Source: Blastocladiella emersonii ATCC 22665 (Eukaryota > Fungi > Blastocladiomycota). From it: a stretch of DNA of 64,000 nucleotides. The first letter of the stretch is position 1, and each line of letters opens with the position of its first letter. Positions 77-27,897 of the stretch are shown in pieces. The translations under genes were made by a program, and so were the position numbers. The DNA is taken from the NCBI GenBank assembly GCA_025594325.1, contig JANHCV010000008.1:558001-622000 (forward strand), written 5' to 3'. The notes under the pieces are model-generated. The model did no database searches. It was not told where the DNA came from and was given only the letters and a program-made list of their open reading frames with translations.

Positions 77-571
77 TTGTTCCTCCTTCCTTATTTGAGA
101 GCAAAAGTCTTCGACTACCCGCCCGTGGAAGGCTCAGCGCTAAGCTCAGCTCAAGTCGCCCCAGGCGACGCACCAGCTCGATCGCAAGCACGCCCCCAGC
201 CCATCAAGCACAAAAGGCCCGAAGCCCATGACCCAATATGCGCGCTTTGCCGGTTCCTCGTACCATTCGATCACAAGGTCATGGTGCCGCACCATCTCAA
301 AGACTGCAAGCGGGTGCGTGACCCTGGCCCAGCGATCCTGGCCATCAATCACGGTCTTCGCGTCGCGCGTATTCGGCTCTACCACGCCGATGGGATGCTC
401 GCTGCCGGAAACAGACTTGAGGCCCGTATTCGCTTCCTTTTGGGCGACCTTCGAACGAAGAAACACATCCACGAGTCGATTTCGCTCGCCGTTGCGTTCT
501 TCGAAGCGATCCTAATCCTCGACCCCAAGGTCATTGAGCGGATCTGGCGGAGGCTCTGTGACATGGTCTAA
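77..571 (+). pseudogene. C-terminal part of a Gag-like/expanded-knuckle family gene (5' end unclear or outside window)
   Basis: CALC-x13-H-x4-C motif followed by RV..P......H..RVARIRL and a RIW.RLC tail, shared with the 849-3077, 5008 and 6310 paralogs. There is an in-frame TGA at 47-49 upstream. Confidence 0.55.
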
Positions 572-848
572 CGTGTCGAGGACGAGAATCGCCACTTGTG
601 CTGTGTCTAAGGAATAAAGGCATCGTTTGTGATGATTCAAGGACCTTCGCTACACGCACGGACGTCAGAACTTTAATGGATAGCAGGAAGCCTACAAAGG
701 TACAGCGAGATCCGACTCGAGCCGCGAAAATCGACGCGCTCGCGATGTGTGGCTGCGCCACACACGTGCATAGAAGTGGTGTCGTTGGAGGGCAGGCGTG
801 GCGAACCTATCGGCCGTCAATCCGACCTCGCTTCCCCGTCGAGATTCA

Positions 849-3077
849 ATGAATAGCTCCCATGTAAATCAACCTCCACTTGCTGCATATTGCTCGCCGA
901 CGGTCATGGATCAGCCAGACGTGCCCGCTTTGATCTCTAGCCAAACTACCGCGCTCCTCCTCCAACTGTGCAACGCGCAGAATGAGCACATCCTCCAAGG
1001 TCTCGGCCACCGTGTTTCCGGCGCACCGTTTCTGGAGACACCGGGTTATCTCCAATCGGTCGCAATCGGTCGCCCCTATCCAAGCGCTTGCGCATGACCT
1101 CGAAGGGCTGGAGCGAGAGCAAGCCCGACTTGCTGTAAGCTCGCACTTGGCACCCGCACACTCGCCGTCCCGAGGCAGGTCTTTGACCTTGTTCCCTTCT
1201 ACTATGCATAAACGGGCCAAAGAGAGTCCTCGATCGCGCAGCCCACCCCGCTCACTGTGCAAGTCACGCGCCCCTTCGCGTTCGCGCTCGCACTCGCACT
1301 CTCGTGAACGCAGTAAACGCACATATTTATCCCGATCTCGTTCCCGTTCGCGCTCTTATTCTCGCTCGCGCTCTCGCTCTCGCTCTCGCTCTTGTAAACG
1401 CAACAAGCGCAGATCGTTACAGCGGCCACGCTCTCGTTCTCGTTCTCGTTCTCGTTCTCGTTCTCGTACTTACTCAAACTCGCGGCTTAGGCCACGATCA
1501 TTGAGCCGCTCGCCGACTCGTGCGACTCGAGCTGCACTACACTTGAGCACAGTAACGCCGGGTTTACACCGTTTGCAACCCTCAAACTTGGAACCCCCAT
1601 CGGCTATCAAGCCGCAAGCTGCACCGGACCGTCCTGGTCACGTCGAACCAAAGTGCGCCTTCTGCCAGCGCATCGTCCCTTTTGAGCGCCTACGCTTTGC
1701 GCCACACGTGTTTTCCAGGCGCCCTCGAGTGCGCGATCCGGTGAAAGCGGCAGAAGTCATCCACCTAGCTGCCCGTGTTGCGCGCCTTCGGTTGACTAAG
1801 GACGACATCGTCCCCTCCGCCAACTTGATTGAGGGCCCGTTTGGTCCAAAATCGCGTCAGAACGCCACGTCAGAACAGAACCGTGAGAATGACCTCATTC
1901 CGCTCCAGCCCGTTCTGCTCATAACCGTGACCCAAACGTCATCGCCTCATTTCATTCTCACACTCGCTGAGAACGCTCGCTGCGACCCGACGAAAGCGCG
2001 CTCGAGCTGCACACTGCCCCAGTAACCATCGCTCACCTTCATACACTCGTTTTTCGTTCACCATCAGCACTCGCATCAGCGAATGGAGCGCGTTCCGCTC
2101 AGACACGGTCCTTGCGCTAGGTCTCGCTTCTATTCTCCACCTCCTCGCCAGGATGGACTCGTGCGCTCCTAGATTAACCTTTTAACTACGTTGAGGACTA
2201 GCTAGACGACGCCTTGAGGGTGTACGTGGCCGTTTCGTGGTCAGTGCTCGCATGAACGACGCGACGCGGTCAGCAGTTTCACTCAACGTCTCTCAGCACT
2301 TGCAACATCGCGCGGGGAGCAGAAGGTCTTTCTTTCACTTGTGACGGACTCAACAAGGATATGCGTCTTCTACGCATGTCAGAGCGCACTGTCGTCGCCA
2401 GGGACGCTAACTTTCTTGAGCTTGGGAGACGCATCAGGCGTGCCATCAAACAGCTGCTGAGGGCCATGGCGCGCGCTCCGCCTCGAAAGGAAACGTAGCG
2501 AACGATGTATCTCGACGTTGGTCATTTCGTACGCGAACGAGTGGTGCGCGGCCTGACGGACGAAGGGGAGCGAGAGAAGCGCGACGGAGTAGAAGCTTAT
2601 GCACGGCAGTTCTCATACAAACGCGAGGGCACCTCGCATTTTCTTTCAGGGACTGCTTAGAGGCACAGCAACCGTTGAGGAACCCGCTGGTGGGGCGAGT
2701 ATACTTTTTTGGCGTGAGGGGAAGCAGGTATTGAGGGGAGAAGTGAACGACAGAACGGTTCAGGCGAAAATGAGCAGAACCGGTCAGCCACGCGAGAATG
2801 GACCAAACACTCACTCAGCCTCAGAACGAGTTCTGACGTCAGCCCCGTTCCGTCAGAATGAGAAAATGCGTGGCTGAATCGTCAGAACGCCGTGGACCAA
2901 ACGGGCCCTGAGCACGTTCGAATCTTCCGCGACTTGGTCCACGCCTCGAAACGCCAAAGTGATGCGAATTCGCACGCGTTTCTGTACCTCAATGCGTGGC
3001 TTACACTCGAGCTTGCCGATCTCCGGCGAATCTGGGTCAAGCTGTGTGAAACGGTGTTGTACTGTCGGACGGGTTGA
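849..3077 (+). pseudogene. SR-rich Gag-like family gene disrupted by a 10-bp duplication and a Harbinger-type insertion
   Basis: ATG at 849. Removing one copy of CAATCGGTCG (1053-1072) joins ORF 798 to ORF 982. Removing 1833-2911 joins ..ANLIE to HVRIFRDL..RRIWVKLCETV, which matches the C-terminus of the 77-571 paralog. Confidence 0.75.
1833..2908. mobile_element. Non-autonomous PIF/Harbinger-type element (1076 bp)
   Basis: Perfect 16-bp TIR GGGCCCGTTTGGTCCA, 3-bp TSD TGA (1830-1832 and 2909-2911), subterminal TCAGAAC repeats and no convincing transposase ORF. Confidence 0.9.
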
Positions 3078-3608
3078 GAAGAGGGCAGAGACTCATTGTG
3101 TCCACGTTTTTGGTTGCCCCACTCTGAACAAGAAATTCTTGGTTTTCACTGCATTAATTCGAGGTCTGAAATATGAAGCCACCAAAGTCCAAGTCCTAGG
3201 AAACGAGAGTGCTCCTTGGACTCACAGCGACCTCGAGCAACTTTCGAGACGCGTCGCGAAATCACGTTTCAATCGCGTGACAGGCGCGAGACGCGTTTTA
3301 AGTTCGGGCCCGCAAAAGCTCTTGGTTCGAGCATTCCACCAGCTAGTGCTTTCCGAGTTACACCAGATTGACGGGGAAGTTGATTGCCGCTTCATCCAAC
3401 GAAAATATCATCGCGTCAGGATTTACGTGTCATGTTCGCCGCGTGTCTCCCGCTGCGGACGTACGCATGCATCGGTCCACGCGCATCTCGCGCACGGATA
3501 GCTGCTTCTACTGACGCAAATTAGCTCCCATCACCCCCGTATAGATACCATCATTCCCTGCAACCCCGCGCAATCTCACAGCTGCCCGGGAAACCGAAAC
3601 CACCGACG

Positions 3609-4994
3609 ATGCATCAACAAACCGCTGCGCCCCAGTCCGCCGCCTCGGCACCTCCTGCCGTCCCGTCGCCCGTCTCGGAGAAGGAGCGCCTCGATGGCCT
3701 GCTGCAGCAACTCATGAACCTGCGGCTCGGTGCCGTCCGCAAGTCGGCCTCATCCGCAGCCGCCGTCCGTCCCGATCATGCCTCGCAACCGCGCCCGAGC
3801 ACGCCTCTGTGCACGCCGCGCACCGGGCTCACCCGCCTCGACTCCACCGTCGAGCAGGTGTGCGGGGTGTACGCACGGCTGTCGCCCCGGTCGCCCACGC
3901 CCACGCCCACGCGCGACGCGCGGTCCCGTTCCCGCTCGCCCGTCCGCTCGCCATCGCGCTCGCGGCCGAGCACGCCCCACTTCGGGTTCGACATCCCGCA
4001 CTCGTGCCCGTTTCCACAGCCGCAGTCGCGGTCCCGGTCTCGCTCGCGCTCGCGGTCCCCGCCGCCCGCCCGTTCGCCGCGACCTCCGAGCGTCGCTGCC
4101 TCGCCGCCCAAGTCGTCGCCGTCGAAGTCGCCGCTCACCCGCCGCCTCTCCGCGTCGACCTTCGCCTTCCCGCCCGAGCCCACGCTCACGTCGGTCACGG
4201 GCCGCCTCGCGCTGATCACGTTCCTCGACGCGGTCGCGCAAGACTCGGGTCCGGGCAATCTGGCCCGCGGCCTGCTTGGCGCGCGGTCGCGCATGCCGTT
4301 CCGCGCGTACTCTAACGTGGCCCTGTTTCTGCGCGACGGCATGGACGACATGGCGGCGCGCGTCACGTCGCTCAACGTGCTCACGTCGCTGCGCCAGCCC
4401 GTGTGGTTCGAGGCGTGGCACACGCTCTCGCGCGACGTCGGCAAGTCGGTGCGCGCGTTCGCCGCACGGTTCCTGACCGCCGCGGTGCCGGTCGTTGGCG
4501 AGGCTGAGATCGCGCACCTGCCGCAGGTCAAGCGCGTGTTTGTCGAGATGTCGCTGCGCGAGGTCAAGGCGTGCCGCGCGGTCATGTTCGCTGCCGAGCA
4601 CGCCGTGTGCGGGTTCGCCCGGCTCGTCGAGCTCGTTGAGATGCAGGCGGCGGGCGACACCGAGTGCCAGTTCTGCGCGCGGATCACGCACATCTCGGCA
4701 GCCCATCGCACGCACCGCGCCGAGGGGTGTGGGCGGTCGGCCAACCTGCTCGGGATCGCGAACCGCATCAAGAAGGGCATGGCCGCCGCATCGGTCGTCG
4801 TCGCGGGCCGCGTCGTGGGCGACGATGAGCGGCGTGCCGACGTTGAGCGCGTCCTGTGGGAGCTCCGCGCGTGGTGCGTGCTGCACGGCGCGCTCGCGGC
4901 CAACCCGGCGTGCGTCGCGGCCCAGTACCTTGACGGGTGTGTGATGTTCGAGGACGCGAAGCTGCGCGCCGTCTGGGACCACGTGTGCATGTAA
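3609..4994 (+). CDS. SR/P-rich protein with Gag capsid-like segment and expanded CCHC knuckle
   Basis: 461-aa ORF. WHTLSRDVGKSVRAFAARF resembles the retrotransposon Gag CA signature; CQFC-x12-H-x4-C follows. Confidence 0.75.
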   Translation: MHQQTAAPQSAASAPPAVPSPVSEKERLDGLLQQLMNLRLGAVRKSASSAAAVRPDHASQPRPSTPLCTPRTGLTRLDSTVEQVCGVYARLSPRSPTPTPTRDARSRSRSPVRSPSRSRPSTPHFGFDIPHSCPFPQPQSRSRSRSRSRSPPPARSPRPPSVAASPPKSSPSKSPLTRRLSASTFAFPPEPTLTSVTGRLALITFLDAVAQDSGPGNLARGLLGARSRMPFRAYSNVALFLRDGMDDMAARVTSLNVLTSLRQPVWFEAWHTLSRDVGKSVRAFAARFLTAAVPVVGEAEIAHLPQVKRVFVEMSLREVKACRAVMFAAEHAVCGFARLVELVEMQAAGDTECQFCARITHISAAHRTHRAEGCGRSANLLGIANRIKKGMAAASVVVAGRVVGDDERRADVERVLWELRAWCVLHGALAANPACVAAQYLDGCVMFEDAKLRAVWDHVCM

Positions 4995-5007
4995 AGGGTG
5001 CGGTATT

Positions 5008-5748
5008 ATGTTCAGTAGAGTAAATAAAGGCGGCTTCGAGCAAAGTTCGAGACATGAGGCCATCAGGGGAAGAAGACATCAGCGGTCCAGCAGTCACGGT
5101 CGGCGACACAGGACGCGCCGCGGGCACGGCATCGCCCTCGCTCTCCATAAACACATGCCCGACGAGCTCGCCCGCAAAACCGTATTTGAGGTGGTTGACC
5201 CGGATCGCCGCAGGAGCGATATCAACGACTGGATTAATCTCACACGTGATCCCAACGAGTCAATCGACGATTTCGCAACGCGGTTCGAGAAGTGCCTCGA
5301 CCGCGTGGCTTTGAAAGCTCTCCTCGCCGAGCGGCTGCACGTGCGGTTCGCGTTCGTTGAAAAGGCCCTTACAGGCCGCGTGAACGAGGCTGCTATCATG
5401 TCGGTCCGCAACGAAGCGGGCCAGGTCAACGTCACGCTGGCGAGCCTGGTCGAGTACGTTCGGCAAGCGGAACGTGACCCCGTCCAGGTAATGCCGCACG
5501 AGTCCTCGCTCGTGTCTTCTTCGTCAGCGCACTTTCCCGCAGCGGCTCAATCCGGACAGGGCAAAATTGAAGGCGAGAAGTGCGAGTTTTGCTCCCACAT
5601 CGAACGCTTCCACCGCCGCCGTCGTATTCTCGCGCACCGCACGCCCGACTGCGACCGCGTCCGCTGGCCGCGCGAAATCGTCGAGGTGATTGATCACGCA
5701 CTTTGCCTCGCGCGGATCCAGCTTGCGCCGGCAGACGTGGATCGTTGA
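5008..5748 (+). CDS. Short Gag-like protein with expanded CCHC knuckle (start uncertain)
   Basis: WINLTRDPNESIDDFATRFEKCL is a Gag CA-like motif; CEFC-x14-H-x4-C-DRV follows. Confidence 0.7.
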   Translation: MFSRVNKGGFEQSSRHEAIRGRRHQRSSSHGRRHRTRRGHGIALALHKHMPDELARKTVFEVVDPDRRRSDINDWINLTRDPNESIDDFATRFEKCLDRVALKALLAERLHVRFAFVEKALTGRVNEAAIMSVRNEAGQVNVTLASLVEYVRQAERDPVQVMPHESSLVSSSSAHFPAAAQSGQGKIEGEKCEFCSHIERFHRRRRILAHRTPDCDRVRWPREIVEVIDHALCLARIQLAPADVDR

Positions 5749-6309
5749 ACTGACTTGCATGTACGCGTTCGAAACGTCTACGATAAGCTTTGCGCTTCGA
5801 AACAGTCCCACAGGGGGGTCCAGCGCGCGGTCGCAAACCTCGAGGCGTGCCTCGTTCTTGGGCCCAGTGAGCTCGCGCGGGTTTGGGATTGGGTGTGTGA
5901 CGTGGTTCCGATATCGAGGATTTGAATGGATTGTAACAAATGACTAGTGTTGTTGTAGCATGATGGGTTTGGCCGCGGGCGCTCACGGGCTGACGTCCGG
6001 GGGAACCACGAATACTCTTGGACAACGGGGCCCGTAAGAGCCAGGCGGGCGCGGCATCGACTCGTACGTCTGATGCGCGACTGGTGGCCTCACAACGTGA
6101 CTCGACGAGATGGCCGGCGACGCGACGCGACGCGAAATCATGTGTGCGTCACGTGTTGCGGTCCGAGACATTCTGCGGCGAGGCTTTCGCGTTGGTCGCT
6201 CCAGCCGCCTCGCCAGGGGTCCTGCCCTCGCCGCGCCCTCGGCCCCTCCCCCTCATCCGCTCCTCTGACCCACTCGCGGAGGTCATGCCAACGACCCAGA
6301 CTCGCTGCA

Positions 6310-8481
6310 ATGCATCACTACACGAACCTGGCGCCGAACGCCGGGTGCCCGAGCGTGCCGACCGAACCGCTGCTCCCGCCCGCGCCGCCGCAATCGGAGC
6401 ACGACGCGCTCCTGTCGCTGCTCAACGCCCGCGTCAGCTGTATCCGGGGCGGCATCGCGCTCCGGTTCGCCGCAGCAAAGGGCGTCGAGCCGCCCGCTTG
6501 GGGCCAGTTTGACCATGGGCCCAGCCTGCCGGAACCACCACATGTTCCATCGACGGCCGAGGAGGTGGACGCGAAGCCTGCGCGCCGGCAAGCTTCGCTT
6601 TGTGTTGTATCGGACTCGGAGGACGATGTCGACGAGGACGTGCACGAACAGCCGGTGCTGACCCGCGCCGAGTTCGATGCGCCATGTCTCAACCGCCAAT
6701 CCCGCTCGAGAACGCGCTCCCGCTCTCCACCGACTGGCCGCAATCCGTCCCCGTCTCGGTCTCGGAAACGCACACGCTCGCCCGATGCGCGCGCCCATCG
6801 CGCCCGTTCTCGGTCCCACTCTCCCGTCGCCACCCGCTCGTCGTCGCAATCGCTATCACGGGCATGGGAGCGTCGGGCGCGCCCCACTCGAGCGCGTCCT
6901 CGTGTGTCCGGTCGGTCTTGCTCGCGCTCCGCGTCGAGGTCGCGCTCCGTTTCCGTCTCGGTATCTCCCTCCCCCGAAACCGCACCCCGCGTTCTCGTCT
7001 CGTCGAGCAGGCCTTCCTCGCCGGCACCTGTCGCCGTGCAACCCGCACTAGATCCGGTTCCCGTGTCGCCCGTCCGCGCCGAATCGCCAGTCGCGCCGGT
7101 GTTTTCGCCCTTGCAGCCCGCGCTCGACGAACATGCACCGTGGATGTCCTCGGATCCCCTCGCGTCATTGCCGCCCGCGGTGCAGCAGCAGCAGCAGTCG
7201 CAAAACCCGTGGCTCACGTTTTCACACCGCCCACCTGCTCCGCCACCCGCTGCGTCGCACCCTCACCCCCAACACCCTCACCCGCCGCCCGCCGCATCGT
7301 ACCCGCACCACTCACACGCGCACGCGCACGTGCACGCGCACCGCCCAGTGCCCGTGCCGTGGTCGCACGCGCACCGCCCAGCGCCCGTGCCGTGGTCGCA
7401 CGCGACGCGCTCCGAGCCGTCCGCGGACCCATACCGCTTCCCGAGCAACAGCGACATCATCAAGCTGACCATGACCGCGTCCTTCACGCTGCCCAACATC
7501 GTGCTCAACACGGCCGCGGGACAGGCGACGCTCGTCGCGTATCTCGACGCCGTCGTGGCGCTGCTCGGCGCGGGCAACCTCGCGCGCGGGATCATCCTGG
7601 GCCGCCGCCGCATCGCCCCGCAGATTTACTTTGACCTGGTCCTCTTCCTGCGCATGGACATGCCCGACGACGTGGCGCGCGCCGCGGTGCTCGGGATCCT
7701 CGACCCGGCACGCCGGCCCGCGTGGCTCGCTGACTGGCGCGCGCTCGCGCGGGTCCCCGGCGAGCCGATCCAGGCGTTCGCGCAGCGGTTTCTCGCGACC
7801 ATCGCGCCCGCCGTCACCGAGGACGAGGCGGGGCGGTTCCCGCAGATCAAGCAGGTCTTCATCGAGCGCGCGCTCCTGCTCCCGCAGCACCGCGACACCA
7901 TCTCGCGCGTCGGCAAGAACACGACGCGGTTCTTTGCCGAGCTCGTCGATATCATCGCCCAGTACGAGACCGCCTTCGGCCCGTCGCCCGCGCCACCGCC
8001 GCTCCCGCCCGTAAACCTCGCGCACGTCGTCGCCGACCCGATCCCACGCGCCGCGAGTCCACCACCACCACCGACTGCACCATCCCCGCCCCCGCCGCCG
8101 TCCGAGCTCGCAGAGTCCGTGATCGTGTGCCGGTTCTGCGCGCACCTGACGCACCTCCCCGCGAGCGACTGGTTGCACGCCGCGGGCGCGGCGTGCCCGC
8201 GGTCGCGCAACGTTCGGGTGCTGGTGCACTTTCTCGAGCACGGGATCCGCGCCACGCGCATGCGGCTCAACCCGTACGACGACCGCGCGAGCGACAGCGA
8301 GGTCGCGCGCCGGCTCGCGGGGATCGCAAGGAAGTTGCGTGGTGTGCCGAGGCAGCGACAGAACGACGCGGTCCGGCTCGCGGGGGATTACTTTGCTGCG
8401 TGCGCTGAGCTCCCGGCGGAGGTCAAGCGCACTGTGTTGAGGATGGTGACCAAGGTCGAGATTGGGAAGGAGGAGACGTGA
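6310..8481 (+). CDS. SR/P/H-rich Gag-like protein with expanded CCHC knuckle
   Basis: Probable ATG at 6310. Clear paralog of 3609 (LVAYLDAV...GNLARG...WRALARVPGEPIQAFAQRF...IKQVFIE); CRFC-x12-H-x5-C. Confidence 0.75.
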   Translation: MHHYTNLAPNAGCPSVPTEPLLPPAPPQSEHDALLSLLNARVSCIRGGIALRFAAAKGVEPPAWGQFDHGPSLPEPPHVPSTAEEVDAKPARRQASLCVVSDSEDDVDEDVHEQPVLTRAEFDAPCLNRQSRSRTRSRSPPTGRNPSPSRSRKRTRSPDARAHRARSRSHSPVATRSSSQSLSRAWERRARPTRARPRVSGRSCSRSASRSRSVSVSVSPSPETAPRVLVSSSRPSSPAPVAVQPALDPVPVSPVRAESPVAPVFSPLQPALDEHAPWMSSDPLASLPPAVQQQQQSQNPWLTFSHRPPAPPPAASHPHPQHPHPPPAASYPHHSHAHAHVHAHRPVPVPWSHAHRPAPVPWSHATRSEPSADPYRFPSNSDIIKLTMTASFTLPNIVLNTAAGQATLVAYLDAVVALLGAGNLARGIILGRRRIAPQIYFDLVLFLRMDMPDDVARAAVLGILDPARRPAWLADWRALARVPGEPIQAFAQRFLATIAPAVTEDEAGRFPQIKQVFIERALLLPQHRDTISRVGKNTTRFFAELVDIIAQYETAFGPSPAPPPLPPVNLAHVVADPIPRAASPPPPPTAPSPPPPPSELAESVIVCRFCAHLTHLPASDWLHAAGAACPRSRNVRVLVHFLEHGIRATRMRLNPYDDRASDSEVARRLAGIARKLRGVPRQRQNDAVRLAGDYFAACAELPAEVKRTVLRMVTKVEIGKEET

Positions 8482-8842: not shown

Positions 8843-10117
8843 ATGAATCTCCCCGACTTGCTGCAAACCTCGCCGTTCTGTGACTGGGCCGCGACAGCGC
8901 ACGCGTTTGATGCGAATACGGCCAAGCTGTTGCAGGTCTTCCACCTCGTGGCCCTCATCGCCGCTGCTGCAACGCTTCCCTTCGCGTACTACACTTGCTA
9001 CAGTTACTTTATCCGTCAACGCCGCCGCTTCTTCGCACCACGAACCGCCGATTCGGCGCGCCTCAAGCCGATGCCAAATGAGTGCTTCATTGCTGGGTTC
9101 ACCGCGGTAATGCACACATTTGTCGTTTGGCATTTGCTCATGTACTTTAACGCGGGCTCGCCGCTCCTGCGCCACTTCGTCCAAAACTTGCGCTACTCGG
9201 TGGCCGTGGTCGGGTGCATCCTGTACCTCGTCGGGTTCCTGTCGAGCATCCCGTCTGGCGCCGCGACGATCGCTTCTGGGTTCGCTCAGGACCGACTGCC
9301 CAGCTGGAAGCGGCTTCTGCTCGCAGTCCCGGTGCCAAAGCCCAAGGCCATGAACCTAATCTTGCTGTACTCCCTCGTCGTACACCTGATCACGGCCAAC
9401 GGGATCGCGATCGGACTGGGGCTTGCAACGACGTGGGCGGAAGCGCGGATCTGGCGGGCTGCACTCTGGACGGTATGGAGCGTTTTCACCGGCTTTCTCG
9501 CGCTATCCCTCGCCTTGTTTGGCGTGCAGCTCCTTGTCATCGTGGACGCTAACGAGCGGCACCGCATCACGACCAAGGTCTCGTCTCGCCCAGAAAGCCT
9601 CATTGCGATCAAAGAGGAGAAAGCCGCGGCGACCCCCGACCCTCCAATCCAGAAAACGGCGGCCATGTCGCAGTCTCCAAGCATCGGCGCCGCCGCGAGC
9701 TCTCTGATCCGCTCCTTGCGGTCCAACAGCCAGGATCAGTCGGCCAGCCGCTCAAACCCAGACGATTCGCCTGATGCCCAGTCCCTCCGACGCGCTCGCT
9801 CGTTCAGCCTCAAGCAACTGCGCGCAGTGATTGCTGCGACGGTGATGCTCTGTAGCTGCTACGTGCTAATCAACGTCATGACCATGGTCGCGCTCGAGCT
9901 GATGCATACCTACGCACCGACCTTGAAAACGCTTTCCAGCGACATGCTGTTCATGATTCCCGCCTTGTACCACATCGTCATGGGCCCGGTCGCAGGATTC
10001 TTCGTCTTTGTCGGGTTTACGGTCGTGATTGTGTTTACGAGGCCGGCGTTGCCCAGCTCGGCGTCTCTAGCGAGCTCCGCTAGTGCTGTGCGATCGCGGT
10101 CGAATTCGAACCAGTAA
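8843..10117 (+). CDS. Seven-transmembrane (GPCR-like topology) protein, paralog 1
   Basis: 424 aa with seven hydrophobic segments and a long S-rich loop between segments 5 and 6; obvious paralog of 13681 and 32154. Confidence 0.75.
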   Translation: MNLPDLLQTSPFCDWAATAHAFDANTAKLLQVFHLVALIAAAATLPFAYYTCYSYFIRQRRRFFAPRTADSARLKPMPNECFIAGFTAVMHTFVVWHLLMYFNAGSPLLRHFVQNLRYSVAVVGCILYLVGFLSSIPSGAATIASGFAQDRLPSWKRLLLAVPVPKPKAMNLILLYSLVVHLITANGIAIGLGLATTWAEARIWRAALWTVWSVFTGFLALSLALFGVQLLVIVDANERHRITTKVSSRPESLIAIKEEKAAATPDPPIQKTAAMSQSPSIGAAASSLIRSLRSNSQDQSASRSNPDDSPDAQSLRRARSFSLKQLRAVIAATVMLCSCYVLINVMTMVALELMHTYAPTLKTLSSDMLFMIPALYHIVMGPVAGFFVFVGFTVVIVFTRPALPSSASLASSASAVRSRSNSNQ

Positions 10118-11344: not shown

Positions 11345-13417
11345 GGAGTAACTTGATGCAACGAATGAACCTGCGCCGTCCTACAAGGACACGCTCGCCA
11401 TCGAGTGCGCGTGCGCGGTCGACTCCCCGCCGTTCGTCCGCCACTTCCAGAAGCTGGCCGTCTCGGGCGACCGGTCCGACATCACCATCTCGCTTCACGG
11501 ACGCACTTATCCGCTTCATTCCGACGTGCTCGTGCAAAGCCCCTTCTTCGCCGCCTTGCTCAACGATGCCTGGCACGCGCCGCGTGAGGGCTTCGCACTC
11601 GGGCTCGATTTTACCTTGTCCGACGACGAAGATGACGAAGATGAGGCCGATGACGGCGAGGATGTCGAGATGAGCGAAGCGGGACGTGACGAAGAAGACG
11701 TCGTGAACCGTTCCGTGTATGCGTGGGAGTCGGTCATCGTTGCGCTTTACGGCGGGTGTGCCAAGGTCATTGCTTCCCGCATCACGCCCGTCAATTTCTT
11801 CGACTCGGTTTGCGCGGCGACTTACTTCAGTACGTCGGCTCGTTTCCTGTTCACGTTATTTCTGCTGACTTGAGACACACTCCTTGTTGTAGACGCTCCG
11901 CAACTTACCAGCGCTTGCAACAAGTACTACGCCTCCGGTCTTGCGAATATGCACTCGATTGAGGATCCTGAGCACAGCCCTTTCGTCGCGCTCGCTGCTC
12001 AGCTGATGGTCACCTGCTGGGAGACCGACCTTCCCGCAGCGACATCTTCTCTCCTCGATTCAACCATGAGCCAGCTCAAGTTCCTCGGCCCACACACGGT
12101 TTCTGAAGCAATTCTCGATCAGTGCCCCACGAGCTCGTTCGCCGCGTGGTCCTTTCGCCGACCTTTTGGGCTCCGTCAGAATTCTCGCGGTTCGGGTTTC
12201 TCGCTGGACTTGGCATTGCCGCCGCCGACACCTTGCGCGTCGTCCTGTTCACGAACATGTCCGAGACGGAACTTGCGCAAATTTTTGCTTCTCCTGTCGT
12301 TGCCGAAGATCCCGTGCTCACGATTGGCATCCGCTCAGCCGCTTTCGACGCGCTCGCACTCCGCTCCACTGTGCTCGCCGCCAAGCCCCACGAACAGCGA
12401 CTGACTACAGCTCGCTACCCGGAGCTGCCCACGGATTCAGAGCCTGTCGTGGACTGCAGCGATGTTGATCCTGGCGCCGAGGATCTTGAATCCGACGAGA
12501 CCATGAGCAACGGCGGCAGTGGAAGCGAGGAATCCGACGACGAGACGAGCGAAAACTCCGAGGATGGTGATGATGATGATGACGAGGGTCAATCCCAGCA
12601 ATCGGACCGCGTGAGTGGACTTCTCGAACTTGCACCAACGCTTGACGCGATGACGGCTGTTCGTCGTCACTCTATGCGCTTCCCATTCAACATCTCGGTC
12701 GAGCGCGGCACTTTCCCTCAATGTGTGCTCCCCCCTGTCTTCTTTGGCGGGCATCTTTGGGCGCTTCGATTTGGCACGCTGACCAAGGGCAACGGCCAGC
12801 GGGAGCCCAAGATTAACCTGTACGTACCGTCAGCTCTCAGCCACGCCGTTATGATCCCTCACGTCGTATGAATTCTCGTTTAGCAATATGCTCGCCCACG
12901 ACCCAACGTCCGTCGCTGCAGCAGGTGGACCACTCGCTGTCTACAGTGACTCGCGTGCGGCTGTCCTGCAACGAGTCCACTCTGTCGTTTTTGTGGAGCA
13001 AGCAGGCTCGGACTCGTCAACTCGCTGCGCCCTCAACGCCGAGATCTCGTGCTTGGCAAGTGCGGAAACTCCCGAATGGCGGAAGCCTTCCGCGCTTCGC
13101 CCGGGCATGACGTGGGGATCAGCCACTGTTCGTGACCTTCCATCAGTGGACGGTGTTGATGCCGACAGAAGGAGGCAGGAGACAAGTAATCAGGGACGTC
13201 TATTTCCTGCCTTCGGCCTCGAACCCAAGACGGGGAGAGGGGAGAATGGATAACAAAGCAGGGCGCGCTGCAGCGGGGTGCGGCGGCGCGGGAGCGAGGG
13301 TTGCGGGCGGCTCACGCGAGATCAGATGATTGATCCCCGCGGTCACGGCCGCATGAACGACACGCAACAGACGGTAAGTCGGTGGTGCGCGGAATGGTGG
13401 TCCTCGAGCTCCTCTGA
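11345..13417 (+). CDS. Multi-exon BTB/POZ (germ-cell-less-like) protein; last exon interrupted by solo LTR; apparent 1-nt frameshift near 12120
   Basis: SDITISLHGRTYPLHSDVLVQSPFFAALLNDAW is a BTB motif and VVLSPTFWAPSEFSRF is BACK-like. GT..AG introns are present. The frame LPSVDG continues after the LTR as KSVVRGMVVLELL-stop (13415-13417). The exact start is uncertain. Confidence 0.6.
13154..13369 (-). mobile_element. Solo LTR (216 bp) of the Ty3/Gypsy family found at 36700-42023
   Basis: TG...CA ends, 5-bp TSD GACGG (13149-13153 and 13370-13374), and sequence closely matching the LTRs at 36700 and 41808. Confidence 0.95.
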
Positions 13418-13680
13418 AGTCAAGGCGGTTGATAAATTTCACAATTAAGAGGCAAGAAAGAGATAGTCACCGAGCCTGTATATAAATGTGTTGTTAGTTC
13501 GAGTACTCATTTGTGCCCAGCTGTCCCTCAGCGTTGGCAAATGCCCGTGTCTCGCACCACGTGATGTCTCGCGGTTTTTCGCGACGCGTGAATCCACCCG
13601 AGCGCGTGGACATCGTGCGACCACCAAGCTCAATCGCGGTGAGCTTTACACCTGCTGCAAAAACCTCCTGTAATCGCACC

Positions 13681-14723
13681 ATGAAGCTCAAGGACATCCC
13701 GCAGACCCCTCCCTTCGGCGATTGGGCAGCAACTGCGCGCGGCTTCGACGCGGTCACCGCCGACCTTGTTCAGCGCTTGCACCTAGTGGCGTTCGCCGGA
13801 GTCCTTGCGAGTTTTCCCTTTGCATTCTATACCCTTCACCACGTCTTCATCCGCCAACGTCGCCGCTTCTTTGCCCCACGGACTTCAGAGTCAGCTTTAA
13901 TCAAACCCATGCCCAATGAATGCTTCACCGCAGCAGTATTCGCTTCTGCGCCGGCGTTTATAATCTGGCAGCTGCTGTTGTATTTTGACGTGGGTCCGCC
14001 CGCCCTTCGACACTTTTTCCAAAACTTGCGCTATACGATGGCCGAGATCGGTAGCATTTTGTACCTTGTTGGGATCCAGTCGACGATTCCGCCAGGCGCT
14101 GCGACCCTCGCTAGCGGCTTTGCCCAGGACTCGTTGCCCTTATGGAAGCGACTCGTGCTTGCTGTTCCCGTCCCCCGGCCCAAAACCATGAACATCGTCA
14201 TGCTCTACTTTCTCATCATTCATGTAATCGCCACCAGTTCCATCACAATTGGTCTGGGGCTCGCCTCAACATGGGACGAAGCTCGAATCTGGCGCGCCGC
14301 CCTGTGGACCGTCTGGATCACCTTCACTGGATTCATCTCGCTCTTCCTTGCCCTCTTCGGCATCCAGCTGCTCGTGATCATTGATGCGAACGAGAGACAT
14401 CGCATGGCTACCGTGGTTCCGTCTCGGCCAGAGAGCTTCATGCTGGTCGAGAAGGAGAGCGCGTCCGCCAGCTCTGCACCCCCAAGCCCGGCAGCCATCA
14501 AGAAGTCGGCCTTCGTGTCGAGATCACTGGGTCTCGATCCTGCGACTCCATCCCGCTTGACACGGTCAAACCAAGGCCATTCCAGCAAAAGGTCTAGCCA
14601 CAGCGACGGAACAGACGCTCCCTCCTTGCGCCGAGCGCGCTCCATCAACCTCAAGCACTTGCGCAGCGTGATCCTGGCCGTCAGCGTTCTGTGCGGCAAC
14701 TACTCAATTATCAACGTACTTAC
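13681..14723 (+). pseudogene. 7TM paralog 2, 5' part, split by the viral insertion
   Basis: Aligns with paralogs 1 and 3 up to NYSIINVLT, where viral sequence begins. Confidence 0.9.
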
Positions 14724-15868
14724 TGTCGTATCCCTTAAGGGATACAACATGGGCTGACCCACTGCCACTCGGGCTGACCAATTGCTTACCCCGAGCGGTC
14801 GGCGACAGTCACTCGGGGTAACCACGTGAGACCCCGTTGCTTACCCCGGGTGGTTAATAAAATGTCGGATTCAAATGTTGTGTTCCCTTAGGGAACACGA
14901 CACGCGGACGGAGGCCAAAGGCCGAAGCAGGTAGGCGGGAGGGTGGGTGGAAGGGAGGGGCAAGCAGTCCAGGAGTGAGTCCCTGACCTGACCCCCGAGC
15001 CCGTCCCTAACCAACCCCTTGGGCTGACCATTGCTTACCCCGAGCGGTTGGCGGCGGCCGGCGAGCGCAGCGAGACGAAGAGCAGCGCAGCTGCGGCTAC
15101 CCACTGACAGAGTTCCCTGGTCTGGTCCCTGAGCACGGCTGCGAGTCGATCTGCGAGTTGATCTGCGAGACAAGTCCAAGAGCAGATCCCTGAGCCTGTC
15201 CCTGACCAACCACTCAGACTGACCATTGCTTACCCCGAGCGGTCGGCGGCGGCCGGCGAGCGCAGCGAGACGAAGAGCAGCGCAGCTGCGGCTACCCACT
15301 GACAGAGTTCCCTGGTCTGGTCCCTGAGCACGGCTGCGAGTCGATCTGCGAGTTGATCTGCGAGACAAGTCCGAGAGCAGATCCCTGAGCCCGTCCCTGA
15401 CCAACCACTCAGACTGACCATTGCTTACCCCGAGCGGTCGGCGGCGGCCTGCAAGCGCAGCGAGACGAAGAGCAGCGCAGCTGCGGCTACCCACTGACAG
15501 AGTTCCCTGGTCTGGTCCCTGAGCACAGCTGCAAGTCGATCTGTGAGCAGTCCCCGAGCCAGTCCCCGAGCCAGTCCCTGACCACCTGCCGCAAGCAGCT
15601 GCTATGAAGCCACTCACCGTAAAGGTCCCAAATTCATGGCAAAAAACAGCAGAGTATATATATACACTACCCTTTTTTGCCATGAATTTGGGACTTTCAA
15701 AGACAAGAGGTCAGGGTACGGGGGGAGGTCAAGGATGGGGGAGCGTCCTTAGCAGCATCAATGTATTGGGCAGGACAGGGGTCAAGGTACAAGGTCAAGG
15801 CAGGGGAGCGTCTTAGCAGGCAGCGTCTTAGCAGGCAGGAAGGCAGCGTGGCAGGTCATGGAGTGTCT
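14724..15868. repeat. Left terminal inverted repeat (1145 bp), containing 195-bp tandem units starting at 15024, 15219 and 15414
   Basis: Reverse complement of 30509-31458 with one extra 195-bp unit; it ends exactly at the helicase stop codon. Confidence 0.92.
15625..15694. other. Perfect 22-bp inverted repeat around a TATATATATA-containing loop; candidate replication origin (mirrored at 30683-30752)
   Basis: GTCCCAAATTCATGGCAAAAAA, a 26-nt spacer, then TTTTTTGCCATGAATTTGGGAC. Confidence 0.6.
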
Positions 15869-18800
15869 TAGAGCTCGTTGTTGTCCTCGTTGTTGTCCTC
15901 GTCCTCGTCCATCTCCAGGACAAACGGCGCCGAATTGGCTGGGGGTCGGTTCCAGGTCTTGTACATGACAAAGTACAGAATGTCGTCTGTCCACTTCAGG
16001 TTACTGTACTTCTTGCCGCGTACTGAGACCCGGGGTTCGTCCTTGTCTGGCACAGCAAGGCACTTGTTAAAGTAGGTGCCAAGAAGCCTGTTTAGGACTG
16101 TTGCTGTGTCACACTTGTAATACCCAAGCTTCTTGAAGTACTTGTGGATGTCCGCTTCAAACTTGGCGGGGATGGTGGCCTGGATGTTGAACTCCTCGGA
16201 CGTGCAGAGGTCCACGTCGTTGTGTTCCAGGAGCTTGTGCAGGACGTGGCCCTTGTCCTTGGTGTAAAAGTGCTGGATACGCTCCATGAAGCTCTCCGCG
16301 TTGTCGTCCCAGATGATCTTCATGTTGTCCATGCTCAGACCATTGAACTTGCGGATGAAGAAGGCCTTGCGGACAGAGAGGGAGATGGTCCAGTCCGGGT
16401 CCTTGATGGTACCTTTGCAGTAGGCACGCATGAGCTCCTTGGATGGTGGCTGGACGTTTGCCCATTCAAAAGACCAGCCCAACGTCATGACATCCTTAAT
16501 CTCGGGGTGCGCCTTGTAGTAGTACTCGGGGGAGTCGTCCATGACAATGTTGGCGACCTTGCAGAAGGCGTCAAAGACCTTGAGGCAGAAGGTCACAGCG
16601 GCCATCTCGTTCTCAAGATCTGTGTTCTTGACAATAGCCCGGTGAAGTTTGCCGACCGAGTCCAAGTCAATGACCTGTAACTTGTTCATGTACGCGCCGT
16701 GGCAACCATTGCTGATCATGAACACGATCTCGTTGTCATTGGGGTAGCGCACGCGGTAGATTGCCTGGAAGAAGTCGCGGGCAGGGACCCAGGACTCGTA
16801 GCGCGCGTACACCTTGTGGAAGACGTCTGGCTTTGAAAAGTTGACCCCCACAGTGATCTTGAGGTTGGCGATGACTATACGGACCGTATCGTCGCCCCAC
16901 ACAGAGTCAGGGTCAATGAGTTCCTTGTCCTCGTGGTTGGGGCGGTCGCCGTGGTAGAGCTTGATCTGCTTGCCAATCTTCCACGTCTCCTCGGCAAAGA
17001 CCCGCTCGAGGTACTCGCCAAAGGTCTGCACCGACCACTTGGTTGACTTCTTGCATGGTCGTGGGAGGAAGAGGTAGAGCTTCTTGTTGGCCTTGAGGTC
17101 GGCAATGATGTTGCTCTCCATGATGTCTTCAGCGGACTTCTCCTTGTCCTTGTCGTCGGTGATGAGGCTCATCTTGCGCGGCTCAAACTCCTTGCCAAGC
17201 GTGTTCGTGATCACCTTGATCTTACCATGGAGTATGGTCTTGATGTTGTGCTCAACAGTAAAGGAGTGGAGGACGTCCATGGTCAGGTTCGTGACAAACG
17301 CGTCCATGAAGATACCCTTGCTGCCCTTGTGCTCGCACAGCGTCTTGAAGGCCTTGAGGTTGGCCTCGAGGTTGTTGCGAATGGTGGTTGTGTGCAACTT
17401 GGCGTCCTGGAACATCTTGAGGACTGTCTTGGACTCGTCCACCACAACAATGTTGTAGGGCTCAGTCAAGTAGTGCAGCGAGCACGGCGAGACAATGAGT
17501 CGCTTGTGATCCCCCAGTGTCTTCTTGTCCTTGATGCTGCGGTAGTTGACAAAGCCAAGCTTCTGTTCGCGGGCTCGACCCTCGGTGTTGTGGGCCAGGG
17601 TGATGCGAGGTGTGATCCAGACCACTCGCGCGTCTGGGTACTTGGCAATGTAGTTGCAAACAGCGCCCGTCTTGTTGGAGCCCATGCCCGTGGCCAGCAC
17701 GTTGAACTTGGCCAGGGTAATGTTGTCGCAGGACAGGAACTGGTTGGGGCTGGTCACGTCCACTGGTACCTCAAGCGACTGCTCAAACTTGGCCATGGCC
17801 TTGGACTTGAACGCGGCTGGGAACCGCTTGTAGAAGATGGCCTTGACAAACGTGTCCAGCACCTGGTAGTTGTTGTTGCTGGCAATCTCGTTCCATCGGC
17901 CCCAGTACTTTTGCATGCGCTGAGCCGAGTTGTCCTGCTGCGACGTCCACGCCCAGAACTGGTCAAATGTGACCCCTTTGCGCATGGCCCATGTCATGAT
18001 CCGCCAGGTCACGTTGTTGTGGAATGCGTTCTCGGGGCTGATGGGGATGTTGTGGAGGATCTCGAGTGGCGTGGCGTTGTAGTAGAAGAAGTCGGGGTCG
18101 ATCTGCACGTCCTTGAACTCGGGGATGTCAAGGTCGTAGTCAAGGCAACCCGCGTGGCGCTTGGTCCGCGCTTCCTTGGCCTTGGCAGACACAAACTCTT
18201 CAAAGGACAGGTCCGAGACCGACACGCAGTTGGGGTCAAAGTCGCACTGGATCAAGTGCTTGGACAGGCAGTCCTTGTTGCCCGAGATCCACACACCGGG
18301 CGTCTTCTTGGGCTTGGACTGGTTGATGCACTTCATGAAGCGGTGCTTGCTGTACACGCTGGAGTCAAAGCCAAGCTTGACGTGGTCAGGGTGGCTGCAG
18401 AACAGCTTCAGGAACGGCATGTCCTTGAGCGTGACCGTGTAGTTGCTGATGACAATGTGCCACGACTTTTTGAGGTCCGTCTCGTAGCCGCAGACCTGGA
18501 GGTTGGCGCCGGGGAACTGGGTCAGGATGACCTTCTTGATGACGTCCAGGGTCACGTCCTTGCGGTTGCCTGGGCAGTCAATGTCAAAGTAGACCTTGGA
18601 CAGGCGATTGGGGTGGACCATCTCCTGGATGCAGCGGTTCTTGTCGAGGAGCCTGGCCAGGTCGGCTGTCTTGACCTTGGCAAAGTAGTGTGCTGCGATG
18701 GGCTGGCCATTTTTGTCAACGCCCTTGTCAACGAGGCGCTTGATGACCGTCTCGTCGTCTTGCAGCTCAGACAAGAGCGTGCGCTGAGGGCCCATGTCGC

Positions 18801-18879
18801 TGTCGCCACCATCCTTGCCATGGAACCACTTGAGACCAAAGGCGGTGCCATATTTACCGGGAACCTGCTTGCAAGGCAT
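15868..18879 (-). CDS. AEP primase + PriCT-2-like + SF2 origin-binding (UL9-like) helicase fusion, about 1003 aa
   Basis: AEP motifs KVYFDID, KKSWHIVI and FDSSVYSKHRFMKCINQSK; a W-rich PriCT-2-like block; helicase motifs TGMGSNKT, VVVDES, FMDAF, ITVGVNF and FQAIYRVR. Start placed at MPCKQ using the promoter motif. Confidence 0.8.
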   Translation of the reverse strand: MPCKQVPGKYGTAFGLKWFHGKDGGDSDMGPQRTLLSELQDDETVIKRLVDKGVDKNGQPIAAHYFAKVKTADLARLLDKNRCIQEMVHPNRLSKVYFDIDCPGNRKDVTLDVIKKVILTQFPGANLQVCGYETDLKKSWHIVISNYTVTLKDMPFLKLFCSHPDHVKLGFDSSVYSKHRFMKCINQSKPKKTPGVWISGNKDCLSKHLIQCDFDPNCVSVSDLSFEEFVSAKAKEARTKRHAGCLDYDLDIPEFKDVQIDPDFFYYNATPLEILHNIPISPENAFHNNVTWRIMTWAMRKGVTFDQFWAWTSQQDNSAQRMQKYWGRWNEIASNNNYQVLDTFVKAIFYKRFPAAFKSKAMAKFEQSLEVPVDVTSPNQFLSCDNITLAKFNVLATGMGSNKTGAVCNYIAKYPDARVVWITPRITLAHNTEGRAREQKLGFVNYRSIKDKKTLGDHKRLIVSPCSLHYLTEPYNIVVVDESKTVLKMFQDAKLHTTTIRNNLEANLKAFKTLCEHKGSKGIFMDAFVTNLTMDVLHSFTVEHNIKTILHGKIKVITNTLGKEFEPRKMSLITDDKDKEKSAEDIMESNIIADLKANKKLYLFLPRPCKKSTKWSVQTFGEYLERVFAEETWKIGKQIKLYHGDRPNHEDKELIDPDSVWGDDTVRIVIANLKITVGVNFSKPDVFHKVYARYESWVPARDFFQAIYRVRYPNDNEIVFMISNGCHGAYMNKLQVIDLDSVGKLHRAIVKNTDLENEMAAVTFCLKVFDAFCKVANIVMDDSPEYYYKAHPEIKDVMTLGWSFEWANVQPPSKELMRAYCKGTIKDPDWTISLSVRKAFFIRKFNGLSMDNMKIIWDDNAESFMERIQHFYTKDKGHVLHKLLEHNDVDLCTSEEFNIQATIPAKFEADIHKYFKKLGYYKCDTATVLNRLLGTYFNKCLAVPDKDEPRVSVRGKKYSNLKWTDDILYFVMYKTWNRPPANSAPFVLEMDEDEDNNEDNNEL

Positions 18880-19054
18880 GTTGTTATGATGAGGTAACAG
18901 AAATGGTGACAGGGCAGGTGCGTTTAAACGCGCAGGATTTAGCGCTAATGGCTGTGACCCGGGAGCCCTTGTTGGCATGGCCCATGACTTGCCACTGTCC
19001 TGACCCAGACCCGGCTGCCCTTGCGTGACCTGACCCTGACCCAGACACAACCTC

Positions 19055-19371
19055 CCCCATGAGCCCAACTTGGGAGCCAGTCGAGGCCGAGGTCACAATC
19101 CGCTCAAACCGTGACCTGGGACGCGACTGAGGGCGAAGAACCGGACCTCCACCCCCCATGACCCCGACTTGGGCGCCAGCAGAGGCCGAGGTCACAAACC
19201 CCCCATGAGCTCAACTTGGGAGCCAGTTGAGGCTGAGGTCACAATCCGCTCAAACCGTGACCTGGGACATGACTGAGGGCGAAGAACCGGACCTCCACCC
19301 CCCCCCCCCATGACCCCGACTTGGGCGCCAGCAGAGGCCGAGGTCACGAACCTCTCAAACCGTGACCTGGG
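19055..19371. repeat. Two copies of a ~146-150 bp unit with internal sub-repeats in the divergent helicase/recombinase intergenic region
   Basis: CCCCATGAGC(C/T)CAACTTGGGAGCCAG...CAAACCGTGACCTGGG recurs at about 19055 and 19201. Confidence 0.85.
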
Positions 19372-19496
19372 CCCTCCCACGGTCCATGACTTGCCACCAC
19401 CCTGACCCTGACCCAGGCCCAGCTACCCAGAAAAAAGAACGTTGCGTTCAAACGCACTTGAGCCCATGGAGCCTTTTTGTTGACAGTCAGTAAACC

Positions 19497-20624: not shown

Positions 20625-20652
20625 TCCTTTTGTCTCCGCCTTTGTTGATACA

Positions 20653-23705: not shown

Positions 23706-23725
23706 GTTTAACCTTAAGCAACAGA

Positions 23726-23977
23726 ATGATTTCCAGCGACCATGACCTGAGCCTGGATGAGTGGCGGGAGCACCTCGCCGGGACCATGCCCGTGCCAAGC
23801 AGCTGGTACAGCAAGAGCGACGAGGACAAGGCCAAGTGGCTACAGAAGCGCGACTGCAAGGCCAACCGGTACACGCACGTCGACAACGAGGCAGCGCGGG
23901 CAGAGCGGGTTAAGATCCGGATCTACAAGGCACTCAACGCCAAGCGCCGGGACCAGGGGGCAAATAGCACCGTCTGA
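23726..23977 (+). CDS. Small charged viral hypothetical protein (83 aa)
   Basis: Viral-like codon usage, divergent from the fibre gene, with TTCTTG-N8-TAAC at 23695-23712 upstream. Confidence 0.5.
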   Translation: MISSDHDLSLDEWREHLAGTMPVPSSWYSKSDEDKAKWLQKRDCKANRYTHVDNEAARAERVKIRIYKALNAKRRDQGANSTV

Positions 23978-24054
23978 GGGACAAAAGGCACCTGCCACGG
24001 GGAAAAAGGTACCAACAGGGGGACGTTTTATTTTTGGTCCATACAGTAACCATC

Positions 24055-25770: not shown

Positions 25771-25779
25771 CGCCCTTTT

Positions 25780-25799
25780 TTGTTGGCAGTCTTTAAATG
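25780..25799 (+). promoter_or_regulatory. Example of the viral bipartite promoter TTGTTG-N8-TAAATG (ATPase gene)
   Basis: The same spacing recurs at 19477, 26610, 27873, 28166, 28939, 23724(-), 29491(-) and 18900(-). Confidence 0.75.
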
Positions 25800-26594: not shown

Positions 26595-26634
26595 ACTCTT
26601 GACTTTTTTTTGTTGCCGAGTCCTAAACTAAACC

Positions 26635-27855: not shown

Positions 27856-27897
27856 CAGCCCTGTCCTTTCTTTTCTTGCGTAGAGTTAAACCCCGCC

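Follow-up and report, generated by a model that had tools for sequence, protein, structure and literature searches.

The co-option of retrotransposon gag genes by their hosts is well documented in animals. In vertebrates, the SCAN domain represents the C-terminal domain of a Gypsy capsid protein (CA) fused to zinc fingers, in genes that are clustered, and mouse Fv1, sheep enJS56A1 and yeast Ty1 p22 are Gag-derived restriction factors. For fungi, Wang and Han (2021, PMC8321522) report three gag co-options. All three are single-copy genes that derive from Copia or Bel-Pao elements, show conservation across families and belong to Dikarya, where they are present in two groups of Dothideomycetes and one of Tremellomycetes. 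The subject of the present analysis is a cluster of five genes, here called g1 to g5, at positions 77–8481 of a stretch of 64,000 nucleotides (the window) from the zoosporic fungus Blastocladiella emersonii ATCC 22665 (Blastocladiomycota; assembly GCA_025594325.1, contig JANHCV010000008.1 of 1,801,506 bp). With a probability that we put at roughly 60%, this cluster is a segment of a large, fast-diverging and arrayed B. emersonii family that descended from gag, without pol or long terminal repeats (LTRs).

Like the domesticated Gags (Arc/dArc, PNMA, RTL/SIRH and the fungal Crtg12–14), the family is made of gag-like open reading frames (ORFs) that lie in a host genome without pol or LTRs, with a ratio of nonsynonymous to synonymous substitution rates (dN/dS) below 1 in three paralog pairs and, in some copies, a codon use resembling that of the host. 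Unlike Crtg12–14, it has dozens of copies in one blastoclad species, is Ty3-like at best, and no orthologs of it were found. Capsid assembly, which has been shown for Arc and PNMA2, would be a putative property of the B. emersonii family. With the vertebrate SCAN zinc-finger clusters it would share a capsid-derived helical module, zinc modules and tandem expansion; SCAN proteins, however, keep only the C-terminal domain of CA together with C2H2 arrays, whereas this family appears to keep a whole CA-like domain followed by a single Cys-Cys-His-Cys (CCHC) site, and no Pfam SCAN match was obtained in its members. The paper on the B. emersonii genome (34.27 Mb in 21 contigs) is silent on transposons and on this family (PMC9730499). 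The family is undescribed: its annotated members are all called “hypothetical”, the majority of units lack annotation, and none of the family searches gave a match.

An arrayed family on one contig

The initial annotation of the window, made from the letters alone, had described five same-strand paralogs at 77–8481. Five plus-strand ORFs are present there, and they align with one another as paralogs, with a similarity far beyond chance (domain E-values of 1e-18 to 1e-40 with a family hidden Markov model, HMM). The paralogy is real, but five proved to be an undercount. Two family HMMs, one for the capsid-like domain (alignment A4, 28 sequences) and one for the zinc motif together with the tail behind it (the C-domain, alignment A3), were run on six-frame translations of nine loci amounting to ~215 kb, namely the window and eight loci (L001–L008) fetched around annotated members, a sampling that is biased to known members. 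This yielded ~50 units. Three of them, m6, m7 and m8, are in the window itself and were found by tblastn with the five named proteins, and the 6.4 kb directly upstream of the window contain at least four further units in the same orientation.

The units are mostly arranged in head-to-tail arrays, with eight units in L003 and ~12 in L004 at a period of 1.3–2.6 kb, while L005 has a single unit; all loci fall within 0.19–1.30 Mb of the contig. Tandem amplification in a fungus, as originally proposed, is accordingly seen in B. emersonii both in the window and at further loci. Within L004, identities are paired at offsets of ~11 kb, which suggests block duplication. Some members stand singly among ordinary host genes, beside a chitin synthase or a P450. 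The 0.19–1.30 Mb part of the contig has few called genes, most of them without a Pfam match, with the chitin synthase and P450 genes interspersed.

Relatives were sought by HMMER with a five-sequence core profile among 1.84 billion protein representatives. At E ≤ 1e-3 there were 21 relatives, all of them B. emersonii hypothetical proteins encoded on this contig (one has an identical copy on another contig), and none from any other organism or metagenome; the 21 are representatives of clusters at 50% identity, as against the ~50 units in the ~215 kb sampled. Word-index protein searches with the core of g3 and the 28-sequence profile retrieved nothing but g3 itself and member P0016, both from the same genome, and a scan of IMG/VR viral contigs with the C-domain alignment gave no confirmed match. 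In such queries the broken genes (g1 and g4) were used as separate pieces, and spliced models were left unjoined.

In a complete unit, an N-terminal helix and a disordered, RS-rich linker precede the all-alpha domain, and a Pro-rich spacer, the CCHC site and a helical tail follow it; this layout is found at full length in g3, g5, m6, m7, the units upstream of the window and a 487-aa unit at L004:264–1724. The N-terminal helix is short and amphipathic, with an L..L.NARL-type motif. The capsid-like all-alpha domain is ~140 aa long and the Pro-rich spacer behind it varies in length, whereas the tail of ~90 residues usually ends in IW..(V/L)C. The four ligands of the putative metal site are kept in 25 of 28 C-domains, in the arrangement C-x2-C-x10-17-H-x4/5-C. 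For g1 to g5 the initial annotation had given this as C-x2-C-x12-14-H-x4/5-C with one Cys replaced by Arg, and had added a W..L.R...(E/K)S..FA.RF segment and a long SR-rich linker, each in three of the genes; all five motifs agree with it, the Arg belonging to g2, the segment to g3, g4 and g5, and the linkers to g2, g3 and g5.

The core of g3 (capsid-like domain plus C-domain) was modelled by AlphaFold2 with the 28-sequence family alignment as all-helical, at a pLDDT of 87.8 and a pTM of 0.55, and the capsid-like domain alone as nine helices at a pLDDT of 92.4 and a pTM of 0.83. No Pfam zinc-finger family, zf-CCHC included, was matched by family members. A classical beta-beta-alpha CCHC finger of the FOG or UBZ4/NEMO type was considered for the metal site and rejected, as the spacing varies from x10 to x17 and the model has no strands around the motif.

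The cluster had also been called pol-less and LTR-less. Pfam and a repeat scan found no protease, reverse transcriptase (RT), integrase or LTR within 77–8481, and the statement extends to the other loci, since probing with the Ty3 pol of the window found no Ty3 pol beside the arrays in L002–L008. In the window, the repeat scan found no direct repeats on either side of the units, nor any repeat of at least 60 nt in the non-coding DNA that separates them. The nearest Ty3 element lies at 36700–42023, on the strand opposite to g1–g5. Members that form part of intact retrotransposons, which had been named as the observation that would speak against domestication, were not seen at the sampled loci.

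Possible relationship of the all-alpha domain to Gag capsid proteins

The resemblance to Ty3/Gypsy (Metaviridae) Gag (PF03732 Retrotrans_gag, PF19259 Ty3_capsid) lies in an all-alpha domain of similar length, followed by a spacer and a Cys-Cys-His-Cys site, and in ~150 collinear profile columns that include a segment ending in ES..(E/D)(F/Y)..RF..L and the next, F..GL-type helix. This was followed up by profile comparison. Ty3/Gypsy Gag-Pol polyproteins were gathered by a word search with the Ty3 pol of the window, Retrotrans_gag was located in them by Pfam, and the genuine Gag CA regions were aligned as A7 (n = 8) and A8 (n = 7). On the side of the family, A4 was used together with A5, a 37-sequence version extended downstream. 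With hhalign, A5 against A7 gave a probability of 44.8% (P = 2.2e-4, score 32.4, 94 columns), A5 against A8 57.2% (P = 1e-4, score 34.3, 150 columns) and A4 against A8 71.4% (P = 3.6e-5, score 37.0, 98 columns). The A5/A8 alignment is collinear over essentially the entire domain in both families. Taken as a comparison of sequence profiles, probabilities of 45–71% are positive but in the grey zone.

Controls were run for these scores. Reversed profiles score 11–20 and column shuffles 10–11 on average (maximum 21.5), and none of 220 column shuffles reaches the real score. When blocks of ten columns are shuffled the maximum is 24.4 and again none (0/70) reaches it, whereas 20-column blocks give means of 19–24.5 and one of 170 does, i.e., one of 240 block shuffles overall. 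The family C-domain scores only 9.6–12.6 against the Gag alignments. Those Gags that are closest to the B. emersonii element give the strongest signal (score 28.8, P = 8e-4) and plant Gags a weaker one (score 16.9, P = 0.069), in an unchanged register. In the reciprocal direction, a Gag CA HMM built from genuine Gags only was run unfiltered against the 4,654 ORF fragments of the nine loci, and its top six matches were family members, all in one register, with a best E-value of 3.5e-4 (g4 at 0.014).

Gag ancestry is moderately supported because of the hhalign results and this reciprocal HMM, and the placement of the CCHC site after the domain fits the order of CA and then nucleocapsid (NC). On these comparisons, the all-alpha domain is quite likely a highly diverged Gag CA of the Ty3/Gypsy type.

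Several results weigh against a Gag origin and can be taken together. All Pfam Gag models remain below threshold, the best being Retrotrans_gag with g4 (E = 0.016, 15.9 bits against a cut-off of 24.1); other sub-threshold matches are to Retrotrans_gag down to E = 0.078 (0.033 for a unit of L001), Gag_p24_C (0.086) and PNMA (0.01–0.04), the Retrotrans_gag and Gag_p24_C matches sharing one segment of ~40 residues. His_Phos_1 matches six members equally weakly; as an identity it was set aside as noise because its fold is alpha/beta while the models are all-alpha. Four sequence and profile searches of the Protein Data Bank (PDB) found no capsid and nothing credible. The initial annotation had named a predicted CA fold as its test, and such a fold is not demonstrated here: the models are confident, but Foldseek gave no match at E ≤ 1e-3 when the g3 core and the domain were compared with PDB and the domain also with BFVD. 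Entries for retroviral CA or Gag appear at noise level (E 2–9, TM 0.25–0.41), numbering 5 among the 50 best PDB matches and 8 among the 50 best in BFVD. PDB gave 70 matches with E up to 10, and the 50 of these that were listed include no Ty3, Arc or PNMA chain. The canonical nucleocapsid knuckle, C-x2-C-x4-H-x4-C, is absent from all copies, in which the inner spacing is x10–17, and the helical tail has no counterpart in Gag. According to the block-shuffle controls, a block of ~20 columns, GE(S/T)V..F..RF..L, in the region of the Gag major-homology motif, accounts for a large part of the hhalign score, with collinearity contributing ~10 units; motif convergence is therefore possible. Finally, the Ty3 element of the window has an ORF in the gag position in which hhalign found no similarity to the family. 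The Gag CA profile likewise fails to recognise this ORF, which indicates that such sequences quickly leave the detectable range.

These points lend themselves to another explanation, i.e., that the family is a lineage-specific orphan without Gag ancestry, whose helical domain and Cys-His site arose independently or came from an unrecognised host protein, and whose likeness to the Gag motif is due to convergence or chance. An orphan would have no significant Pfam, PDB-sequence or Foldseek capsid match, a zinc spacing unlike the Gag knuckle, a tail without Gag counterpart and no relatives beyond the B. emersonii genome among the 1.84 billion representatives, all of which is observed, and the 20-column shuffles, which keep the motif block, once equalled the real score. 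It would not account as readily for an alignment that stays collinear over 150 columns, for reversed and column-shuffled controls that score far lower, for a Gag HMM whose top six matches are family members only, for the presence of three different Gag-CA families among the 24 noise-level Pfam families, or for a domain order as in CA and then NC. The orphan explanation is therefore held to be unlikely, with descent from gag preferred. The original proposal of a Gag-derived family is thus partly supported, by hhalign, the Gag CA HMM and the domain order, while the Pfam scores below threshold and the Foldseek searches without capsid match speak against it.

If the family does come from gag, it has moved far from Ty3/Gypsy Gag: it has neither pol nor protease nor LTRs and lies in tandem arrays, its knuckle has x10–17 in place of x4, the CA-like domain is preceded by an RS-rich linker, a helical tail of ~90 aa is present in addition, and neither Pfam nor Foldseek detects the relationship at significance.

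Selection, codon use and decay

The family is highly diverged, with a median pairwise identity of 24% (maximum 70%) between capsid-like domains. An estimate of dN/dS had been proposed as a check of domestication. For the three least saturated paralog pairs, with dS of 0.78–0.94, it is 0.26, 0.32 and 0.38, and the capsid-like domain has therefore been under purifying selection after duplication. Purifying selection is what is looked for in a domesticated gag, and it is found here, a reading that is valid only if the Gag ancestry is real. A codon-position periodicity of GC is present in all 37 near-complete capsid-like domains. The GC content at third codon positions (GC3) is at least 0.85 in 10 of these 37 and below the host level in most copies; in the cores of g3 and g5 it is 0.92 and 0.90, as compared with 0.94 in a host Rho GTPase exon. 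Frame shifts, truncations or stops are present in many copies, and this pattern of intact and decayed copies is one of birth and death within the arrays. Judged by their sequences, g1, g2, g4 and m8 look degenerate, and in no other species were syntenic orthologs found among the 1.84 billion protein representatives; both observations weigh against the preferred reading, and in view of the second, long-term retention is conjectural.

Decay of this kind would also be expected if the family were a selfish or decaying repeat without host function, that is, the leftovers of a gag-only non-autonomous element or an ORF-bearing satellite that spread through unequal crossing-over where recombination is poor and transposons abound, with the constraint reflecting the needs of the element itself. 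The restriction of the family to a single stretch of one contig, poor in genes and rich in transposons, is in keeping with this, as are the packing of units (down to 14 bp between g3 and g4), the many frame-shifted, truncated or stopped copies, the excess of ~50 units in ~215 kb over ~21 annotated representatives, and a GC3 that in most copies is below the host level. A repeat without function is harder to reconcile with a dN/dS of 0.26–0.38 between paralogs that diverged inside the arrays, with a ligand quartet that is retained in 25 of 28 C-domains despite a median identity of 24%, and with a host-level GC3 in 10 of 37 domains, those of g3 and g5 among them. Moreover, some members stand alone amid ordinary genes (chitin synthase, P450), and the repeat scan of the window found neither LTRs nor conserved non-coding ends. 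A purely selfish repeat is thus considered improbable, and a family descended from gag and partly under constraint remains the preferred reading.

Members of the family in the window

The first of the five genes, g1 (77–571, plus strand), is the C-terminal half of a unit, with a CCHC site at 239–307 (C-x2-C-x13-H-x4-C) and a helical tail; it matches the C-domain HMM at E = 2.4e-32 and has a GC3 of 0.66. The corresponding N-terminal half, upstream of the window at L001:5015–6441, is divided between two reading frames, and g1 is probably a pseudogene, or else contains an intron. In g2 (982–2025, plus strand), an N-terminal helix region and an RS-rich linker (1198–1548) are followed directly by a zinc motif at 1654–1722, which is laid out as in g1 except that the last Cys is replaced by Arg. 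The capsid-like domain is lacking, the C-domain is truncated (positions 3–81 of the C-domain HMM only), and the GC content of the three codon positions (0.58/0.60/0.58) has no periodicity; g2 is a probable pseudogene as well. Downstream of it, a plus-strand segment at 2892–3077 was noticed by eye to end in L..L..IW..LC..V, as do the tails of g1 and g3. It does not match the C-domain HMM at E 0.01, and from its sequence it is a possible orphan relic of a family tail.

By comparison, g3 (3609–4994, plus strand) is an intact unit of 461 aa and an annotated gene, whose product occurs once in public data. Its N-terminal helix motif is at 3702–3728, the RS-rich linker at 3870–4130, the capsid-like domain at 4206–4592 and the CCHC site, with x12/x4 spacing, at 4665–4730, and the helical tail extends to 4991. 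After a gap of only 14 bp it is followed by g4 (5008–5907, plus strand), a short unit with a basic, S/R-rich N-terminus (5032–5133), a capsid-like domain at 5125–5430 and a CCHC site at 5581–5652 (x14/x4). An in-frame TGA at 5746–5748 ends the g4 ORF (5008–5748) ahead of the tail, which lies at 5752–5907.

The longest unit, g5 (6073–8481, plus strand), is intact and encodes 802 aa in a single ORF, with the N-terminal helix at 6409–6435, the RS-rich linker at 6676–7026, a Pro/His-rich spacer, the capsid-like domain at 7519–7926, the CCHC site (x12/x5) at 8128–8196 and a tail up to 8460. The public model of g5 (6310–8481, 575 aa) is spliced, and its predicted introns replace the RS-rich linker by a segment from another frame. 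This is probably an annotation artefact, because the linker is common to the paralogs and is kept by the uninterrupted ORF. In the five-gene stretch, g3 and g5 are the only genes that were called by the annotators.

At the other end of the window, three members are encoded on the minus strand. Of these, m8 (57126–58001) is a degenerate copy that retains only the N-terminal helix motif and the C-domain (57261–57587), with Tyr in place of the first Cys of C-x2-C (Y-x2-C). The other two are full-length: m6 (58400–59845) encodes 481 aa, with a capsid-like domain at 59000–59416, a CCHC site (x17) at 58808–58888 and a low GC3 of 0.57, and m7 (60675–62153) encodes 492 aa, with a capsid-like domain at 61191–61610 and a CCHC site at 61023–61088. 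The capsid-like domain of m7 is 56% identical to that of family member P0004, which is ~400 kb away on the contig.

Mobile elements and other neighbours

The wider neighbourhood of the cluster is rich in mobile elements. An element of ~16.7 kb at 14724–31458 is bounded by terminal inverted repeats of ~1.1 kb (14724–15868 and 30509–31458) that are 98–99% complementary. It encodes a Herpes_ori_bp-type helicase (15868–19068, minus strand), an rve integrase (20653–21765, plus strand) and a packaging ATPase of the poxvirus A32/FtsK type (25797–26594, plus strand), and looks like an integrated element of the Polinton/Maverick type or a virophage-like one. No capsid gene was identified in it, two candidate ORFs having no sequence match in PDB. 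It has perhaps been active recently, because copies in L002 and L006 have 74–99% protein identity.

That the family might represent genes of such an integrated DNA virus or Polinton-like element, e.g., its structural or packaging proteins, was considered in view of the position of this element, with its helicase, integrase and A32-type ATPase, 6 kb from the cluster and of the copies beside family members in L002 and L006, but is very improbable and was rejected, as no family unit lies inside the inverted repeats, the family occurs at loci without the element (L003–L005 and L007–L008), IMG/VR contigs and BFVD structures hold no relatives, and all 21 relatives are B. emersonii proteins.

The Ty3/Gypsy element of the window (36700–42023, minus strand) has 216-nt LTRs that are 98% identical (36700–36915 and 41808–42023). 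Its RT, RNase H and integrase are recognisable, the frame being broken into several ORFs, and the ORF in the gag position (40361–41203) has no Pfam Gag match. An LTR-like fragment at 13154–13369 is 67% identical to its LTR. A Harbinger/PIF-type DDE_Tnp_4 transposase is encoded at 55024–55809 (minus strand), and a 97.6%-identical copy lies inside the family array of L004 (L004:15893–16648), which suggests a recently active DNA transposon. At 62610–63998 (minus strand), adjoining m7, is a C-terminal fragment of a PIF1/UvrD-type helicase with weak Pfam matches. Called genes with weak PIF1 matches are also present near the family arrays in L003 and L008, and these PIF1-like genes may belong to Helitron-like elements in the region.

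Other neighbours are local paralogs. Three unannotated hydrophobic proteins, possibly of membranes (8843–10117, 13513–14757 and 32127–33428), are 57–64% identical and have no Pfam match; two of the three flank the inverted-repeat element. A helical domain of ~150 aa is shared, at 42–51% identity, by paralogs at 34936–35427, 42549–43250 and 45896–46339, which are often adjoined by LRR/FNIP-type repeat proteins (33688–34806, 35989–36567, 44389–45828 and 56129–57070). Between 48001 and 52000 the GC content rises to 0.74–0.75, as compared with ~0.60 around it, and long overlapping ORFs are found on both strands; a 952-aa ORF of this GC-rich stretch (47752–50610, minus strand) has no Pfam match, and a Rho-family GTPase exon (47100–47642) lies just upstream of the stretch.

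Possible history, role and significance

The following course of events would fit the preferred reading of a family descended from gag. A gag gene would have lost its pol and LTRs and then become the ancestor of the family, which would have been amplified by unequal crossing-over and segmental duplication and not by retrotransposition, with copies continually born and lost. The proteins may self-associate via the CA-like domain, and the RS-rich linker and the zinc site may bind nucleic acid.

With low confidence, and by analogy, the most likely role of the family would be a conflict-driven one, e.g., an interference with Ty3-like elements like that of Fv1 or Ty1 p22. As with Fv1, enJS56A1 and Ty1 p22, pol-less Gag-like proteins of this kind could co-assemble with the capsids of retroelements, whether incoming or resident, and poison them, and Ty3-type elements share the window; unlike these factors, of which there are one or few, the family has dozens of copies, and it shows no detectable similarity to the ORF that the Ty3 element of the window has in the gag position. 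A bolder proposal, which is held to be doubtful, is that the proteins self-assemble through a diverged capsid domain, bind RNA and act as decoys that block Ty3-like elements or as carriers of RNA. In that case fungi would have their first Gag-derived host family with multiple copies, which would also be the first from an early-diverging zoosporic lineage, with dozens to possibly hundreds of units in ~1 Mb of one chromosome under birth and death.

Even without the link to Gag, B. emersonii would have an unannotated orphan family of ~50 units in ~215 kb, in which the metal site is conserved and the fold, although predicted with confidence, has no structural match. If the family is Gag-derived, it would mean that capsid genes can be captured and massively expanded as host genes or as selfish genes resident in the host, in parallel to the KRAB or SCAN zinc-finger clusters and in an organism that is far from animals. 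As B. emersonii is under development as a laboratory model (PMC9730499), a Gag-derived family would also make it practicable to ask whether retroelements are restrained by Gag decoys that have been amplified.

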